Made by a program: the position numbers and the translations under genes. A stretch of DNA of 64,000 nt from Octopus bimaculoides (taxonomy: Eukaryota). Below are positions 39,501-41,105 of the stretch, in pieces. Location: assembly GCF_001194135.2 (NCBI RefSeq), contig NC_069010.1, positions 9,251,577 to 9,315,576 on the forward strand, written 5' to 3'. Numbering within the stretch: the first letter of the stretch is position 1; each line of letters starts with the position of its first letter. The notes beneath the pieces were generated by a model. That model did not search any database. It was not told the DNA's origin and saw only the letters and a list, made by a program, of their open reading frames with translations.

Positions 39501-41105
39501 ACCACAGGCTTGGCTGTGTGGTAAGAAGTTTGCTTCTCCACCACATGGTTTTGGATAAGTGTCTTTTGCAATAGCCTCAGGCCAAATAATGCTTTGTGAG
39601 TGGATTTAGTTGGCAGAAATTGAAAGAAAACTGTTGTGTGTGTATGTTTGTGTCTCACCACTGCTTGACAACCGGTGTTGATATGTTTACATCCCTATAA
39701 CTTAGTGGTTTGGCAAAGAAGACCAATCAAATAAGTACTGGGTTTAAAAAAATAAGTCATGGGGTCAATTCATTCAACTAGAATTCATTAAATCAGTGCC
39801 CCAGCATGGCCGCAGTCTAATGAATGAGACAAGGCAAAGGAAAACAATACAAACTGTATAGATAGAGAGGCATTTAATTTATTGGTGATGGGCTATTTTG
39901 GATGGGTGATTGTGGTACAAAGATGGTAAATGTGATGGATGTGGATGCAGATTTGTAATCATCTTGTTGTTGTTGTTTCAGCCTTTGACCATGTGATGGA
40001 ATTGATGTCACATGCCGAAATGTTCATCTGATACCCTCTCTCATTTTCTGTTTTTTTTGTTTTATTGTTGTAGACAATGCAATCAATCAACAATTTGTCC
40101 TTTCAATTATCTGACCATCTTTTGAAGGCAGGAAGCTGGCAGAATCATTAGCACATCAGGCAAAACGCTTTACGATCAGGGTTCAAATTCCGCCGAGGCT
40201 GAGTTTGCCTTTCATCCTTTCAGGCTCAATAAAATAGGTACCAGTTACGCACTGGGGCGATGTAGTTGACTTACCCCCTCCTCCAGAATTGCTCTCCTTT
40301 TAAATCTGTATTTGATCCTCTGATGGGAAACTCATTTACATCACATGCCTACACATTCCTCCCATGCCCTCCCTCACTTATTCTCTCTTTTTCCCTTTTC
40401 TATCGCATGTGTCTACATATTCGTTTTCTACTCCACTTTCTCATTCATTCCCTGCTTCTCATTCTCTGTTTCTCCTCTGATTGTTGAGACAAAACAACCC
40501 AGCGACAACTTGTCCTTTCAATTATTATTGACCGTGCCATCGTCGAATACCCATTTATGTCACACACCCCTCCACATTCGTTCCCGTGCCCCCTCTCACG
40601 CGTTTCTCTTCTTTCGTTTCCGGTTTCTCTCTCGTTGCAGACAACGCAACCAAGCGACAACGCAGAGCTGTTTGTCAAGGTTTGCAAATTGATGGTTGAA
40701 ACATGTCTCCCCAGTGGCGAACCTGACCTCTTCAACTCCTCCTCCCACTACTACAACAACTACAACAACAACAACAACAACAACATTACCAACTTCAACA
40801 ACAACCTCAACAACAACAACAACAGCAGCAGCAGCAGCAGCAACAACAACAGCAGCCTTGCCATCGTGTCCAACCTGAATTTGTCAAGCTCCATGTCTAA
40901 CCTGAGCGTGGGAAGTTTACACTCACCGACGGAGAAGGACTCAACGCTTGACGCTTATGTTTTTTCTGGCTCATGCTCTCTCAACAATGGCAGCCGTATG
41001 CGTCATGTGTCAGCGAACAATGTCTCCAGTAAGGTGACTCGGTCGGGTAGTTTGAAACGAATGGATAGTGTTGGGAAGAGGCACGCTTCATTCCAACATG
41101 ATTGA
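488..41105 (+). CDS. NF1: Neurofibromin (NF1), 3' half: 29 coding exons in window, 5' part (incl. GAP domain) outside window
   Basis: Hand-spliced exons all have AG/GT ends and consistent phases. Total 4024 nt = 1 nt + 1341 codons incl. stop. The translation matches remembered NF1 motifs ([75 protein letters not shown]). Confidence 0.97.
842..1009 (+). CDS. NF1: NF1 exon w2 [13 protein letters not shown]...[22 protein letters not shown](K), Sec14 start
   Basis: ttctag|G ... AA|gtaagc. Confidence 0.95.
1330..1453 (+). CDS. NF1: NF1 exon w3 [21 protein letters not shown]...SENRFR (Sec14)
   Basis: tctttag|A ... AGG|gtgagt. Confidence 0.95.
1570..2036 (+). mobile_element. Two family B copies in tandem
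   Basis: GGCATTAGGAAGGGCATC at 1661 and 1903, each ending in GAT repeats. Confidence 0.65.
2491..2628 (+). CDS. NF1: NF1 exon w4 [13 protein letters not shown]...[22 protein letters not shown] (Sec14)
   Basis: gtccag|ACC ... AAG|gtaaaa. Confidence 0.95.
3189..3356 (+). CDS. NF1: NF1 exon w5 [11 protein letters not shown]...[27 protein letters not shown] (Sec14/PH junction)
   Basis: ccttacag|AAC ... AAA|gtaaga; 168 nt, phase 0/0. Confidence 0.95.
3626..3727 (+). CDS. NF1: NF1 exon w6 [34 protein letters not shown] (PH)
   Basis: ctgcag|GTG ... GAG|gtgagt. Confidence 0.95.
4552..4689 (+). CDS. NF1: NF1 exon w7 [15 protein letters not shown]...[11 protein letters not shown] (PH)
   Basis: gtccag|GTG ... 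CCT|gtgagt. Confidence 0.95.
4857..4919 (+). CDS. NF1: NF1 exon w8 [21 protein letters not shown]
   Basis: ctccag|GAT ... GTG|gtaagt; not in ORF track. Confidence 0.95.
5504..5621 (+). CDS. NF1: NF1 exon w9 [23 protein letters not shown]...QLLETT(G)
   Basis: tttcag|GCC ... G|gtctgt. Confidence 0.95.
6211..6394 (+). CDS. NF1: NF1 exon w10 [11 protein letters not shown]...[12 protein letters not shown]...PWLPNLT(R)
   Basis: ttgtag|GT ... AG|gtaagg. Confidence 0.95.
6585..7320 (+). mobile_element. CR1/L2-type LINE 3' fragment (RT C-terminal region), decayed
   Basis: [19 protein letters not shown]...[13 protein letters not shown]...[14 protein letters not shown], typical of the CR1/L2 ORF2 tail. 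Confidence 0.85.
7395..7482 (+). CDS. NF1: NF1 exon w11 [29 protein letters not shown]
   Basis: ttccag|G ... GAG|gttcgt. Confidence 0.93.
7711..8075 (+). mobile_element. tRNA-head SINE family A copy
   Basis: Head ...GGTTTCAGGTTCAGTCCCACTGC...; body GGAAACTGAAAGAAGCC; tail GCTCCAGTATGGC..CAGT; shared with many copies in window. Confidence 0.75.
8558..8644 (+). CDS. NF1: NF1 exon w12 [29 protein letters not shown]
   Basis: tttcag|ATG ... AAG|gtatgt. Confidence 0.95.
8763..9022. mobile_element. 260-nt imperfect palindrome (fold-back/MITE-like)
   Basis: Arms of about 125 nt align end to end (GGTTTTTATATAAGCTGAAAGCTTAT vs revcomp GGTATTTATATAAGCTTAAAGCTTAT); few-nt loop near 8890. Confidence 0.8.
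9054..9093 (+). ncRNA. Minimal type-I hammerhead-like motif (Penelope-type relic), core carries a 1-nt insertion
   Basis: GGC-C(a)TGACGA-AGGG aaatag CCCT-GAAA-C taga G-TC-GCC. Confidence 0.5.
9490..9660 (-). mobile_element. Penelope-type terminal-repeat relic with degenerate hammerhead-like motif
   Basis: Minus strand TCTTT-CTGTGGA-AGAGCGTAGGCTT-GAAA-CGTT-AAAGA at 9621-9584. Confidence 0.45.
9905..10024 (+). CDS. NF1: NF1 exon w13 [22 protein letters not shown]...VIGRLCR
   Basis: ttgcag|CGA ... AGG|gtaagg. Confidence 0.95.
10527..10644 (+). CDS. NF1: NF1 exon w14 [39 protein letters not shown](V)
   Basis: ttccag|TTG ... G|gtgagt; not in ORF track. Confidence 0.95.
10918..11058 (+). CDS. 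NF1: NF1 exon w15 [12 protein letters not shown]...[24 protein letters not shown](E)
   Basis: tttcag|TT ... G|gtaagt. Confidence 0.95.
11125..11520 (-). mobile_element. SINE family A copy
   Basis: Reverse-complement match to family A head and tail; central (TA)n. Confidence 0.75.
12285..12505 (+). CDS. NF1: NF1 exon w16 [32 protein letters not shown]...LLEIME
   Basis: ttgcag|AA ... GAG|gtaagg. Confidence 0.95.
13017..13078 (+). CDS. NF1: NF1 exon w17 [20 protein letters not shown](Q)
   Basis: ttgcag|GCT ... CA|gtgagt. Confidence 0.95.
13950..14064 (+). CDS. NF1: NF1 exon w18 [22 protein letters not shown]...LLIIMMK
   Basis: ttgtag|G ... AAG|gtaaaa. Confidence 0.95.
14793..15535. other. 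Assembly gap (N run); others at 2411, 9393, 13635, 35089, 41192, 45416, 46419, 59312, 62958
   Basis: N characters; NF1 phases stay consistent across the gaps, so no constitutive exon needs to be hidden. Confidence 0.99.
15710..15796 (+). CDS. NF1: NF1 exon w19 [29 protein letters not shown]
   Basis: tttcag|TCA ... CCT|gtaagt. Confidence 0.93.
16085..16330 (-). mobile_element. SINE family A 3' half
   Basis: GGCCATGCTGGGGCAC...GAACTGCTAAGTTA. Confidence 0.7.
16430..16595 (+). mobile_element. SINE family A 3' half (inverted relative to 16085 copy)
   Basis: GTAACTTATCAGTTCAGCAAAA...GGTGCTCCAGCATGGC. Confidence 0.7.
16692..16832 (+). CDS. NF1: NF1 exon w20 [19 protein letters not shown]...[18 protein letters not shown]
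   Basis: ttccag|GAA ... ACG|gtgagt. Confidence 0.95.
17081..17207 (+). CDS. NF1: NF1 exon w21 [21 protein letters not shown]...[12 protein letters not shown](G)
   Basis: ttgcag|TCT ... G|gtaaac. Confidence 0.95.
17430..17517 (+). CDS. NF1: NF1 exon w22 [28 protein letters not shown](R)
   Basis: cgacag|GG ... AG|gtaggt. Confidence 0.93.
17798..17841 (+). CDS. NF1: NF1 exon w23 [14 protein letters not shown](A), 44 nt
   Basis: ttccag|G ... G|gtattt. Confidence 0.93.
18241..18590 (+). mobile_element. Family B internal subrepeat region
   Basis: Repeated GGCACGTAAAA...TTTGAGCG...GCCAGT..ACTGGC units. Confidence 0.6.
18946..19244 (+). CDS. NF1: NF1 exon w24 [17 protein letters not shown]...[11 protein letters not shown]...HLMQNQ
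   Basis: tttcag|CA ... CAG|gtacat; GC/CpG-rich block in AT-rich intron. Confidence 0.92.
19350..19870 (+). mobile_element. Two tandem/nested SINE family A copies
   Basis: Head motif CCCAACCATGTGGTT/CCCAACCACATGGTT occurs twice; family A tail. Confidence 0.7.
20110..20520. repeat. ~105-bp tandem repeat (module C), 4 copies
   Basis: GTAGGGTGTGATTTGAGGG at 20241, 20348 and 20451; also two copies at 5705-5920. Confidence 0.85.
20835..21085 (-). mobile_element. Family B copy
   Basis: Near-identical to 25218 copy. Confidence 0.75.
21420..21690 (-). mobile_element. tRNA-head SINE family F copy
   Basis: Minus-strand head GTGGAGGCACATGGTTTAGTGG...GGTTTCGATTCCTGG; second copy 36425-36700. Confidence 0.65.
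24293..24529 (+). CDS. NF1: NF1 exon w25 [11 protein letters not shown]...[16 protein letters not shown]...VLVLTVL
   Basis: ctgcag|GTG ... TTG|gtaagt. Confidence 0.93.
25218..25665 (-). mobile_element. Non-autonomous RTE-associated element (family B) with (GAT)n tail and internal subrepeats
   Basis: (ATC)n-GTTTAACGTCCGCTTTCCATGCTAGCATGGGTTGGACG...GATGCCCTTCCTAACGCCAACC; near-identical copies at 20835, 50254 and 51415. RTE link is inferred from the tail and remembered 5'-UTR motif. Confidence 0.7.
25911..26011 (+). CDS. NF1: NF1 exon w26 [33 protein letters not shown](I), 101 nt
   Basis: caacag|GCA ... AT|gtaagt. Confidence 0.95.
26903..27042 (+). CDS. NF1: NF1 exon w27 [17 protein letters not shown]...QQQLSFLQ(S)
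   Basis: ttgcag|A ... A|gtatgt. Confidence 0.95.
27900..28148 (+). mobile_element. Family B copy
   Basis: TTAGGAAGGGCATCCGGCC...CCATGCCAGCATG...(GAT)n. Confidence 0.65.
28326..28372 (+). CDS. NF1: NF1 exon w28 [15 protein letters not shown], 47 nt
   Basis: cacttag|GT ... AAG|gtaagt. Confidence 0.95.
29911..29938. promoter_or_regulatory. Tandem NRF1/EWG-like GCGCATGCGC-type sites in a CpG-rich patch
   Basis: CACGCATGCGTG (perfect palindrome, 29911-29922) and TACGCATGCGCA (11/12 to TGCGCATGCGCA, 29927-29938). Confidence 0.4.
32465..32880 (-). mobile_element. SINE family A copy
   Basis: Full head-body-tail in reverse orientation with central (CA)n. Confidence 0.75.
32985..33430. repeat. ~90-100-bp tandem units (module D) followed by module C
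   Basis: GTTGTTT...CAGGT...ATCAAAGAC...CCA..TGTGACCAT repeated about 4 times. Confidence 0.7.
36425..36700 (-). mobile_element. SINE family F copy
   Basis: CATGAAATGAAGTGTTTTGCTCAAGAACAC...CCACTAAACTATGCACCTCCAC. Confidence 0.65.
37280..37560. repeat. Degenerate minisatellite
   Basis: TTGTCCC(C)TTTTC and CCCCTATCTT(T)TCAT recur 4-5 times. Confidence 0.6.
37905..38530 (-). mobile_element. SINE family A copy (interrupted)
   Basis: Tail at 37905, body CAGTTTCCATCTA occurs twice, head at about 38520. Confidence 0.65.
39505..39845 (+). mobile_element. SINE family A copy
   Basis: GGCTGTGTGGTAAGAAGTTTGCTT...GCCCCAGCATGGCCGCAGTC. Confidence 0.75.
40133..40290 (+). mobile_element. tRNA-head SINE family E copy
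   Basis: GCTGGCAGAATCATTAGCAC...GGTTCAAATTCCGCCGAGG...TTTGCCTTTCATCCTTT; also at 45243, 47305, 47521 and 57940. Confidence 0.7.
40641..41105 (+). CDS. NF1: NF1 terminal exon w29 [12 protein letters not shown]...MVETCLP...poly-N/S...[11 protein letters not shown]...KRHASFQHD*
   Basis: gttgcag|ACA, phase 0 after a 12.27-kb intron; NF1 C-terminal motifs AELFV, MVETCLP, NLNLSSS; stop TGA 41103-41105. Confidence 0.92.
   Translation, partial: TTQPSDNAELFVKVCKLMVETCLPSGEPDLFNSSSHYYNNYNNNNNNNITNFNNNLNNNNNSSSSSSNNNSSLAIVSNLNLSSSMSNLSVGSLHSPTEKDSTLDAYVFSGSCSLNNGSRMRHVSANNVSSKVTRSGSLKRMDSVGKRHASFQHD

Follow-up and report, generated by a model that had tools for sequence, protein, structure and literature searches.

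Partial tandem copies of the terminal-exon acceptor in Octopus bimaculoides NF1 are probably decaying relics, and a conserved alternative C-terminus comes from a cassette exon upstream

Intronic pseudo-exons and decoy (cryptic) 3′ splice sites are often linked to transposable elements. Splice sites can also be multiplied by tandem exon duplication, a known origin of alternative (mutually exclusive) exons (reviewed in PMC9013439, PMC9741552). In the neurofibromin gene NF1 of humans, a small alternative exon, 48a, characterizes type 3 neurofibromin; this muscle-specific exon of 54 nt keeps the reading frame and adds 18 residues (PMC7692384).

The NF1 locus of O. bimaculoides has features of all three. 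As in tandem exon duplication, exon sequence together with a splice site has been copied locally, so that homologous acceptors compete within one intron. However, the octopus copies fall short of a complete exon flanked by two splice sites, carrying no more than the acceptor and the initial 21 nt of the terminal exon; they are unable to replace the parent exon, and they decay neutrally, whereas functional duplicated exons are typically strongly conserved. The copies designated here as A and B resemble pseudo-exons and decoy 3′ splice sites in being intronic, absent from annotated mRNAs and variable between species, and A has a good splice-site score. A transposable element is involved here too, as a SINE supplies a stop codon, an AATAAA and one more acceptor-like site. 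Unlike usual pseudo-exons, which arise by chance or from a transposable element alone, these copies stem from the neighbouring true acceptor, and their non-use is deduced from annotation. Human exon 48a is the closest analogue of another element of the locus, a small cassette exon which likewise lies near the NF1 3′ end and alters the C-terminal region of neurofibromin.

In the window (the whole stretch of O. bimaculoides DNA analysed, 64,000 nt), protein-to-genome mapping placed XP_014783736.1 exactly on 30 exons. This confirmed the true junction 28372/40641 as well as the phase-0 donor at 28372 that the first-pass annotation had read from the sequence. Its assignment of the terminal exon to NF1 was also correct: the encoded protein matches exactly the C-termini of XP_014783736.1 and of isoforms X1-X3 and aligns with residues 2624-2748 and 2768-2833 of human neurofibromin (E = 1.6e-44; chains 7pgp, 7r03, 7moc), its first 24 residues aligning with QTQIPDYAELIVKFLDALIDTYLP. 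The penultimate exon is the same in O. sinensis (47/47 nt), and the first 120 nt of the terminal exon are 98.3% identical between the two species.

28326-28372, + strand: penultimate constitutive NF1 coding exon (exact XP_014783736.1 mapping; donor AAG/gtaagt, phase 0)
40641-41105, + strand: coding part of the NF1 terminal exon, ending in FQHD, stop codon 41103-41105 (neurofibromin alignment, exact C-terminus match)

Three related blocks, each a version of the 3′ splice site together with the initial 21 nt of this terminal exon, were found on re-reading the window exactly where they had been reported: block A (ttgtag/ACAATGCAATCAATCAACAAT) at 40074, block B (ttgag/ACAAAACAACCCAGCGACAAC) at 40489 and block C, the true exon start (ttgcag/ACAACGCAACCAAGCGACAAC), at 40641. 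Over the 21-nt exon start, B is identical to C at 18/21 positions, as noted before, and A at 16/21; neither strand of the 64-kb window has a further copy of the C 21-mer exceeding 15/21. The blocks belong to longer units:

39963-40073, + strand: upstream, intron-derived part of unit A, alignable to the corresponding parts of the other units; includes an acceptor-like site (39982) from one more degenerate unit
40074-40151, + strand: block A, pseudo-exon copy with T-rich tract and TAG acceptor; hypothetical 25-codon tail, stop TAG at 40149-40151
40127-40295, + strand: SINE inserted in unit A, with many dispersed copies genome-wide
40296-40404, + strand: remnant of a fourth unit (A′), whose acceptor and exon-start part are absent in O. 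bimaculoides
40405-40509, + strand: block B, with pyrimidine tract, weak GAG acceptor and 21-nt exon-start copy (40489-40509)
40510-40640, + strand: last repeat unit, in which the last NF1 intron actually ends (pyrimidine tract and CAG acceptor; aligns with the upstream units)

The homology of the units reaches into the intron 5′ of each block (A to B, score 64 against 19±2.6 for shuffled sequences; B unit to C unit, 42 against 18±2.5). The units repeat head to tail every ~152 nt (152 nt from B to C), and a search of the whole 2.34-Gb genome found them at this locus only; the array is broken by the SINE, and one copy is deleted. Two of its elements, the fourth-unit remnant and the unit-0 acceptor-like site at 39982, as well as the cassette exon at 33988-34036, had escaped the first-pass annotation. 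The stretch common to A and B, which includes TTGTCCTTTCAATTAT, is indeed there (39 nt at 82% identity); its interpretation as C codons 8-20 with a deletion did not hold, scoring no better than shuffled sequence. The hypothetical products were predicted correctly: use of A would add 25 residues (TMQSINN…) and end at a stop (40149-40151) within the SINE, and use of B would give a 67-aa tail ending at 40690-40692.

The SINE call likewise agrees with the genome, over which numerous copies of about the same length are scattered. A first look gave at least 4249 candidates, and in the 40 that were scored, identity across the entire element (positions 1-169) is 75-89%. Besides the stop codon of A, the element provides an AATAAA (40228), as reported, and an acceptor-like site (40224). 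In a check for a tRNA-, 5S- or 7SL-derived head, ARAGORN gave no tRNA and Rfam no match. The 81-kb O. sinensis locus contains at least nine copies of the SINE, among them the orthologue of the one in unit A; therefore, the insertion predates the split of the two species.

The acceptors were scored with a position weight matrix (PWM) built from only 28 mapped acceptors, all of this gene, on which A reaches 14.3-14.8, compared with 10.2 for C, and exceeds every other unannotated AG in 40 kb; judged from the letters alone, it looks usable. The acceptor-like site at 39982 (tttcag/CC) scores 13.9 and the A′ acceptor of O. sinensis and O. vulgaris 13.0. Block B scores 4.4 and has G at position -3, where the 28 mapped acceptors have C (23), T (5) or G (0).

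For comparison, we used three closely related Octopus species (O. bimaculoides, O. sinensis, O. vulgaris) and one cuttlefish lineage. The first-pass annotation had proposed to look for A and B in relatives: the array is kept in O. sinensis and O. vulgaris but apparently decaying, and in cuttlefish the 2.4 kb that precede the terminal exon contain no block copy (score 27; shuffled sequences, 23.7±2.5). Between O. bimaculoides and O. sinensis, true exons are 98-100% and flanking intron 83-92% identical. The A tail, at 90.5% identity with -1/+1 indels, and the B tail region (40489-40640), at 75.5% with six indels that are not multiples of three and break the frame, thus diverge like neutral intron, and B even lies below the surrounding intron. 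Furthermore, the number of copies varies by species. In O. sinensis and O. vulgaris, a SINE of ~400 nt sits at the A acceptor (PWM -27) and separates it from the A body, which has 1-nt indels. These two species have kept a full A′ copy (ttgttacag/ACAGTCCAACCAACCAACAAC), whereas O. bimaculoides lacks about 85 nt there, and with them the A′ acceptor and exon start. The site at 39982 is CAG in O. bimaculoides and CAA in O. sinensis, where CT microsatellites have also grown in the array region and 1.2 kb has been inserted. Hence, the splice sites of A and A′ and the frames of the A and B tails are not conserved between species; the GAG acceptor and 21-mer of B are kept in all three.

Ten annotated isoform models were retrieved (O. 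bimaculoides X1-X4, O. sinensis X1-X5 and that of O. vulgaris), and A, A′ or B is used in 0/10 of them. The annotated ends are canonical, FSKEKT or intron read-through, none being TMQSINN… or the B tail. Absence from the RefSeq/Gnomon models is compatible with minor isoforms using A or B.

We therefore regard A and B as non-functional, or at most cryptic, decaying relics of local tandem duplication (probability about 0.8). Of the two possibilities raised earlier, decayed pseudo-exons from serial local duplication are supported by the tandem units, the neutral-like divergence, the gain and loss of copies and the SINE disruption between Octopus species. The other, a duplication-born switch of NF1 C-termini, finds no support, as no annotated isoform of the three species contains A or B and their acceptors and frames are not conserved. 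The array probably arose from a segment of ~152 nt that ran from the 3′ end of the last NF1 intron through the acceptor to nucleotide 21 of the terminal exon. A single upstream pseudo-copy would have formed first and gained the TTGTCCTTTCAA… sequence, and would then have been re-duplicated to at least four units (unit 0, A, A′ and B) followed by the real C. This probably happened in the octopod lineage, after the split from cuttlefish and before that of O. bimaculoides from O. sinensis and O. vulgaris. As the real exon follows the last copy only, productive splicing would have to go through C, and the upstream copies, presumably unused in vivo, could drift under relaxed selection; G at -3 in B, the SINE in the A body and the deletion of A′ in O. 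bimaculoides would be products of this drift. Some low-level cryptic use of A is conceivable, its acceptor scoring as strong.

Alternative NF1 C-termini, as suggested by the first-pass annotation, do occur in cephalopods, but their source is read-through and a cassette exon 6.6 kb upstream of the region of A, B and the terminal exon, not the array:

33988-34036, + strand: 49-nt cassette exon (ttcttag/GAGAAAACTTGA…GTTTAGCA/gtaagt), present in RefSeq X4

The annotated, conserved alternative C-terminus is that of this exon, and the isoform is already known (RefSeq X4). Its inclusion leads to …FSK-EKT-stop, the TGA (33997-33999) following …FSK by three codons and preceding the last junction by 37 nt; the last ~154 residues are lost. 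The FSKEKT end is found in X4, UniRef A0A0L8G786 and O. sinensis X5. The exon has a single copy in the genome, and both of its splice sites are within the range of real sites (acceptor 10.6, donor 9.0). It is 49/49 identical, including the flanks, in the three Octopus species. In cuttlefish NF1 mRNA contigs (L003-L012), which come from many runs, it is 45/48 identical and the proteins end with FSKDKT*. Both splice sites, presence in transcripts and conservation thus mark it as a conserved truncating cassette. Unlike human 48a, it is 48-49 nt long and halts translation after three codons. The human exon lies one intron further downstream, and positional homology of the two is therefore unlikely.

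The existence of a conserved isoform truncated right after FSK means that such products should be tolerated, and A in O. bimaculoides, or A′ in O. sinensis and O. vulgaris, might be a used, lineage-specific alternative 3′ splice site, truncating NF1 after …FSK with a short novel tail, a product functionally equivalent to the cassette isoform. Both sites match the best real ones on the gene's PWM. EJC-dependent NMD is generally judged by the 50-55-nt rule, and the stop at 40149 would fall in the last exon of an A transcript, with no downstream junction to trigger it. In addition, a short tail with a stop needs little sequence conservation to serve as a simple truncation. Nevertheless, we consider such use unlikely: it is seen in none of the annotated isoforms of the three species, O. 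sinensis and O. vulgaris have lost A to a SINE and O. bimaculoides has lost A′ by deletion, so that neither is orthologously conserved, and the A tail is frame-shifted between species. It is similarly unlikely that A and A′ are spliced at low or tissue-specific levels and yield a lineage-specific neurofibromin truncated after …FSK, mimicking the ancient truncation (…FSK-EKT*/DKT*) common to octopus and cuttlefish. The duplicated acceptors would in that case offer a second, recently arisen and still evolving way of making an NF1 isoform that lacks the tail and has a physiological use.

A regulatory role would require no splicing of the copies at all: pyrimidine-rich decoy acceptors could bind U2AF/PTB-type factors and tune the choice between cassette, read-through and terminal exon. 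The region is CU-rich with few AG dinucleotides, 3 of the 10 best unannotated acceptor-like sites of 40 kb fall within a 260-nt span a short way upstream of the terminal exon, and the array has been kept since before the Octopus species split. However, the factor binding is putative, the single sites are not conserved, the region accepts SINEs, microsatellite growth, the 1.2-kb insertion and the loss of a unit, and cuttlefish has the same cassette splicing with no array in the 2.4 kb sampled; we hold this role to be quite improbable. Least credible of all is a functional weak acceptor at B producing the 67-aa tail. Its GAG and 21-mer persist in all three species and its frame is open over 67 codons in O. 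bimaculoides, but an open frame is expected, since CT-rich sequence is poor in stop codons. Moreover, no real acceptor of the gene (0/28) has G at -3, B is absent from all annotated isoforms, and its tail has diverged beyond the surrounding intron. Decaying relics of duplication thus remain our preferred reading of A and B. Intron read-through after 28372, annotated in O. sinensis, represents a further alternative NF1 C-terminus.

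The 3′ part of NF1 lies on the + strand of the window (handle G000:C30:9251577-9315576; 2.34-Gb source assembly). The first-pass annotation had assigned the terminal exon to this gene, and the assignment was confirmed: human neurofibromin aligns with the last 250 residues (E=1.6e-44), and protein-to-genome mapping places XP_014783736.1 (P0165, O. bimaculoides) residue for residue onto 30 exons (486-41102), with an exact GT-AG splice resolved at 28 of the 29 junctions. The first 24 residues of the terminal exon align to human QTQIPDYAELIVKFLDALIDTYLP. Because of this alignment and the exact mapping, the terminal acceptor at 40641 (block C) is a genuine, deeply conserved one. 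The features discussed here are:

26011/26903, + strand, NF1 junction from the XP_014783736.1 mapping
27042/28326, + strand, NF1 junction from the same mapping
28372/40641, + strand, last NF1 junction from the same mapping; 28372 is the phase 0 donor of the penultimate constitutive exon (28326-28372, protein …FSK)
33988-34036, + strand, 49-nt cassette exon in the last intron, ttcttag/GAGAAAACTTGAGCGTGAATTGAGAAGCCTGAGATGGAGACGTTTAGCA/gtaagt, the same exon as the cuttlefish insert described below
40074 and 40489, + strand, blocks A and B, related to the exon start at C

The positions and sequences reported earlier for A, B and C were the same on direct reading. B is identical to C at 18 of 21 nt and A at 16 of 21; on both strands of the whole window, all remaining 21-mers stay at or below 15/21. 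The similarity continues beyond the 21-mers into ~90 nt of alignable intron upstream of each block (A to B, alignment score 64 vs 19±2.6 for shuffles; B unit to C unit, 42 vs 18±2.5), and a multiple alignment makes a common unit visible across the copies. The starts of B and C are 152 nt apart; those of A and B are 415 nt apart because a 169-nt SINE (40127-40295) and the remnant of an additional unit, A′ (40296-404), lie between them. The observed pattern is genuine and not a product of chance, and the hypothetical tails of A and B, with their stops, are as originally given. One detail did not hold: the resemblance of TTGTCCTTTCAATTAT to C codons 8-20, of which it was taken to be a shortened copy, is indistinguishable from chance. 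The local-alignment score of TTGTCCTTTCAATTAT and the sequence following it was reached in 59-394 of 500 shuffles, so that homology to C can be shown for no more than the upstream intron and the first 21 nt.

The unit is unique to this locus in the genome. Dispersed copies, as expected of a transposable element, were sought genome-wide and only this locus was found, which makes the unit a local tandem duplication rather than a transposable element. After the 21-mer, where C continues as the real exon, the pseudo-copies A, B and the O. sinensis A′ have TTGTCCTTTCAA… in common in the multiple alignment; this common sequence suggests that one founder pseudo-copy arose first and was re-duplicated afterwards.

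Splice-site strength was assessed with an acceptor position weight matrix (PWM) trained on the 28 acceptors of NF1 itself (leave-one-out mean 11.0±3.8). On this scale A (14.3-14.8) lies above C (10.2), and B (4.4) below it; position -3 is G in B, and C (23) or T (5) among the 28 real acceptors. Given its score, A looks splice-competent on sequence alone, and this apparent acceptor strength is the main evidence against A being dead. Ten of 1995 unannotated AGs (600-40640) score at least 10, three of which cluster at 39982, 40074 and 40224.

The annotated models join C alone, the last copy of the array. Among the annotated isoforms of three Octopus species (annotation only), no model ends in TMQSINN…, as use of A would give, or in the B tail. 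The search for octopod transcripts brought up only RNA contigs of cuttlefish and gene models from NCBI, and the junction evidence for O. bimaculoides is annotation.

C-terminal ends of annotated NF1 isoforms in Octopus
O. bimaculoides: canonical end, X1-X3 and XP_014783736.1; …GVFSKEKT end, X4 (XP_052834127.1) and UniRef A0A0L8G786
O. sinensis: canonical end, X1, X2 and X4; …FSKEKT end, X5; read-through into the intron past 28372, X3
O. vulgaris: canonical end, CAI9744453.1; other ends, none retrieved

Two readings of the array had been offered, i.e., a duplication-born switch of NF1 C-termini or decayed pseudo-exons. The absence of A and B from annotated isoforms speaks against the switch, as does a comparison with the orthologues of this locus in O. 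sinensis (L013, CM016887.1) and O. vulgaris (L024, OX597843.1). In both relatives, the T-tract of A is split from its body, exactly at their boundary, by a ~400-nt SINE from a different family, leaving an acceptor context of …gtaaaagagtaaaag/AATGCAATCAG (PWM -27), and the body of A differs by seven substitutions and two 1-nt indels, which change the reading frame and displace the stop. A′ is complete in these species (ttgttacag/ACAGTCCAACCAACCAACAAC, PWM 13.0; L013 76642 in O. sinensis), and O. bimaculoides has its upstream half only. Between A′ and B, O. sinensis has an insertion of 1.2 kb in which (CT)n repeats have expanded. B keeps its GAG acceptor in both relatives, but its hypothetical tail region (152 nt) is only 75.5% identical to O. 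sinensis, with six indels, none of which (0/6) preserves the frame. Site 39982 is an acceptor-like CAG in O. bimaculoides and CAA in O. sinensis. In contrast, true exons are nearly invariant (first 120 nt of C, 98.3% identical; 28326-28372, 47/47); alignable intron is 83-92% identical. In cuttlefish, no copy of the unit was found in the 2.4 kb upstream of the terminal exon (contigs L014-L019).

By this comparison, the array predates the O. bimaculoides/O. sinensis split, is octopod-specific or at least missing from the 2.4 kb sampled in cuttlefish, and evolves without detectable constraint. The proposed switch is unsupported, with neither an annotated isoform on A or B nor constraint in relatives, whereas a tandem unit, unconstrained divergence and copy gain and loss between Octopus species fit pseudo-exons that arose by duplication and decayed. 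The best explanation (probability about 0.8) is that the acceptor of the terminal exon was partially copied in tandem and that the resulting array is now in decay, with A, given its strong acceptor, perhaps still in cryptic use. By type, the feature belongs with intronic pseudo-exons and decoy-site arrays, here made by tandem duplication. Functional tandem exon duplications differ from it in that whole exons are copied and strongly conserved (PMC9013439, PMC9741552), whereas the NF1 copies are partial and decaying. Through a partial duplication across the intron-exon boundary, several acceptors that look good have come to precede an essential terminal exon, which is relevant to annotation quality and to the evolution of splice sites.

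In the O. sinensis locus, the insertion (L013 76990-77800; 1.2 kb) has long (CT)n/CTGCTT microsatellites on both sides and ~800 nt of complex sequence inside, and is missing from O. bimaculoides. The SINE at 40127-40295 is genuinely dispersed (first-look candidates, at least 4249; scored copies 75-89% identical across the full length), and it gives A its stop codon, an AATAAA at 40228 and the acceptor-like site at 40224. This site (cctttcag/GCTC, PWM 14.8) stands directly ahead of the AATAAA, and both are kept in the orthologous O. sinensis SINE copy, so that SINE copies of this kind may give rise to cryptic terminal exons more generally. Typing of the SINE by Rfam and ARAGORN gave nothing above threshold; the lone Rfam match, a sub-threshold mir-297 (39414-39482, - strand; 37 bits vs a gathering score of 90), falls in a TA/CA-rich simple repeat and is almost certainly a low-complexity artefact.

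The annotated alternative end comes instead from a small cassette exon conserved between octopus and cuttlefish, which corrects the picture of cephalopod NF1 C-termini. Cuttlefish NF1 mRNA contigs from many sequencing runs (L003-L012) have a 48-nt insert that separates …FSK from TTQPSDN and stops translation at …FSK-DKT; contigs with the insert occur in 58 indexed blocks of the collection. All 14 members of the cuttlefish protein cluster, Acanthosepion pharaonis CAE1159348.1 among them, have this …DKT end. A longer cuttlefish variant (L021 510-566) extends the cassette by 57 nt via a downstream alternative donor; it has the same DKT end, with the stop now 94 nt before the last junction. In O. 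bimaculoides, the exon at 33988-34036 is single-copy in the genome, scores within the range of real sites at both ends (acceptor 10.6, donor 9.0), and is already captured in RefSeq models. With its flanks it is identical in O. sinensis and O. vulgaris, and it matches the cuttlefish insert at 45 of 48 positions with one indel. The cassette did not align significantly to the A/B/C unit, of which it might have been an older copy (score reached in 67/500 shuffles).

The cassette stop is codon 4, and the 37 nt past it are as conserved as the coding part. Since, moreover, exon length does not keep to multiples of three (49 nt in Octopus vs 48 in cuttlefish), the constraint would seem to act at the RNA level, e.g., on splicing signals, rather than on coding. 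With 37 nt between the stop and the last junction, the short form would be spared nonsense-mediated decay under the 50-55-nt rule, which is mammalian and may not hold in cephalopods, and would encode neurofibromin without its last ~154 residues. Should this tail-less isoform prove abundant, which the cuttlefish assemblies suggest, it would be the one worth study. Blocks A and B are probably ordinary genomic debris. Among 92 retrieved NF1 proteins with a WRFAGxF[ST]K motif (cluster representatives for most species), the FSK-[DE]KT end is confined to cephalopods. A literature search not aimed at cephalopod NF1 isoforms found no published description of the exon; its nearest described analogue is human NF1 exon 48a, which is 54 nt long, in frame and muscle-specific (PMC7692384).

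The 48-nt cuttlefish cassette has an ATG in the canonical frame, so the NF1 tail is encoded past the stop by a separate 126-aa ORF (L003 8332-8712; METLA+TTQPSDN…). In the 49-nt Octopus cassette the same ATG is out of frame and opens a 22-codon ORF (34019-34036 plus 40641 onward); the cuttlefish arrangement is therefore not conserved.

Past donor 28372, the frame stays open for 33 codons (28373-28474), and O. sinensis X3 is annotated as exactly this read-through, which would add a third type of NF1 C-terminus, perhaps produced through intronic polyadenylation. Runs of N mark assembly gaps inside the locus, including one of ~750 nt (14790-15540) in the intron between exon end 14064 and exon start 15710 and a short one (41189-41201) in the 3′ UTR directly past the stop codon. 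The terminal exon contains a coding (AAC)n/(AGC)n microsatellite (40753-40856), an Asn/Ser-rich run of ~45 residues that differs in length between O. bimaculoides and O. sinensis; cuttlefish and other molluscs show …GDDLDLQNPYPNSLGI… at this place. XP_014783736.1, O. bimaculoides X4 and O. sinensis X5 include a second alternative cassette exon (22697-22765; 69 nt, 23 residues), which UniRef A0A0L8G786 and O. sinensis X2 skip.
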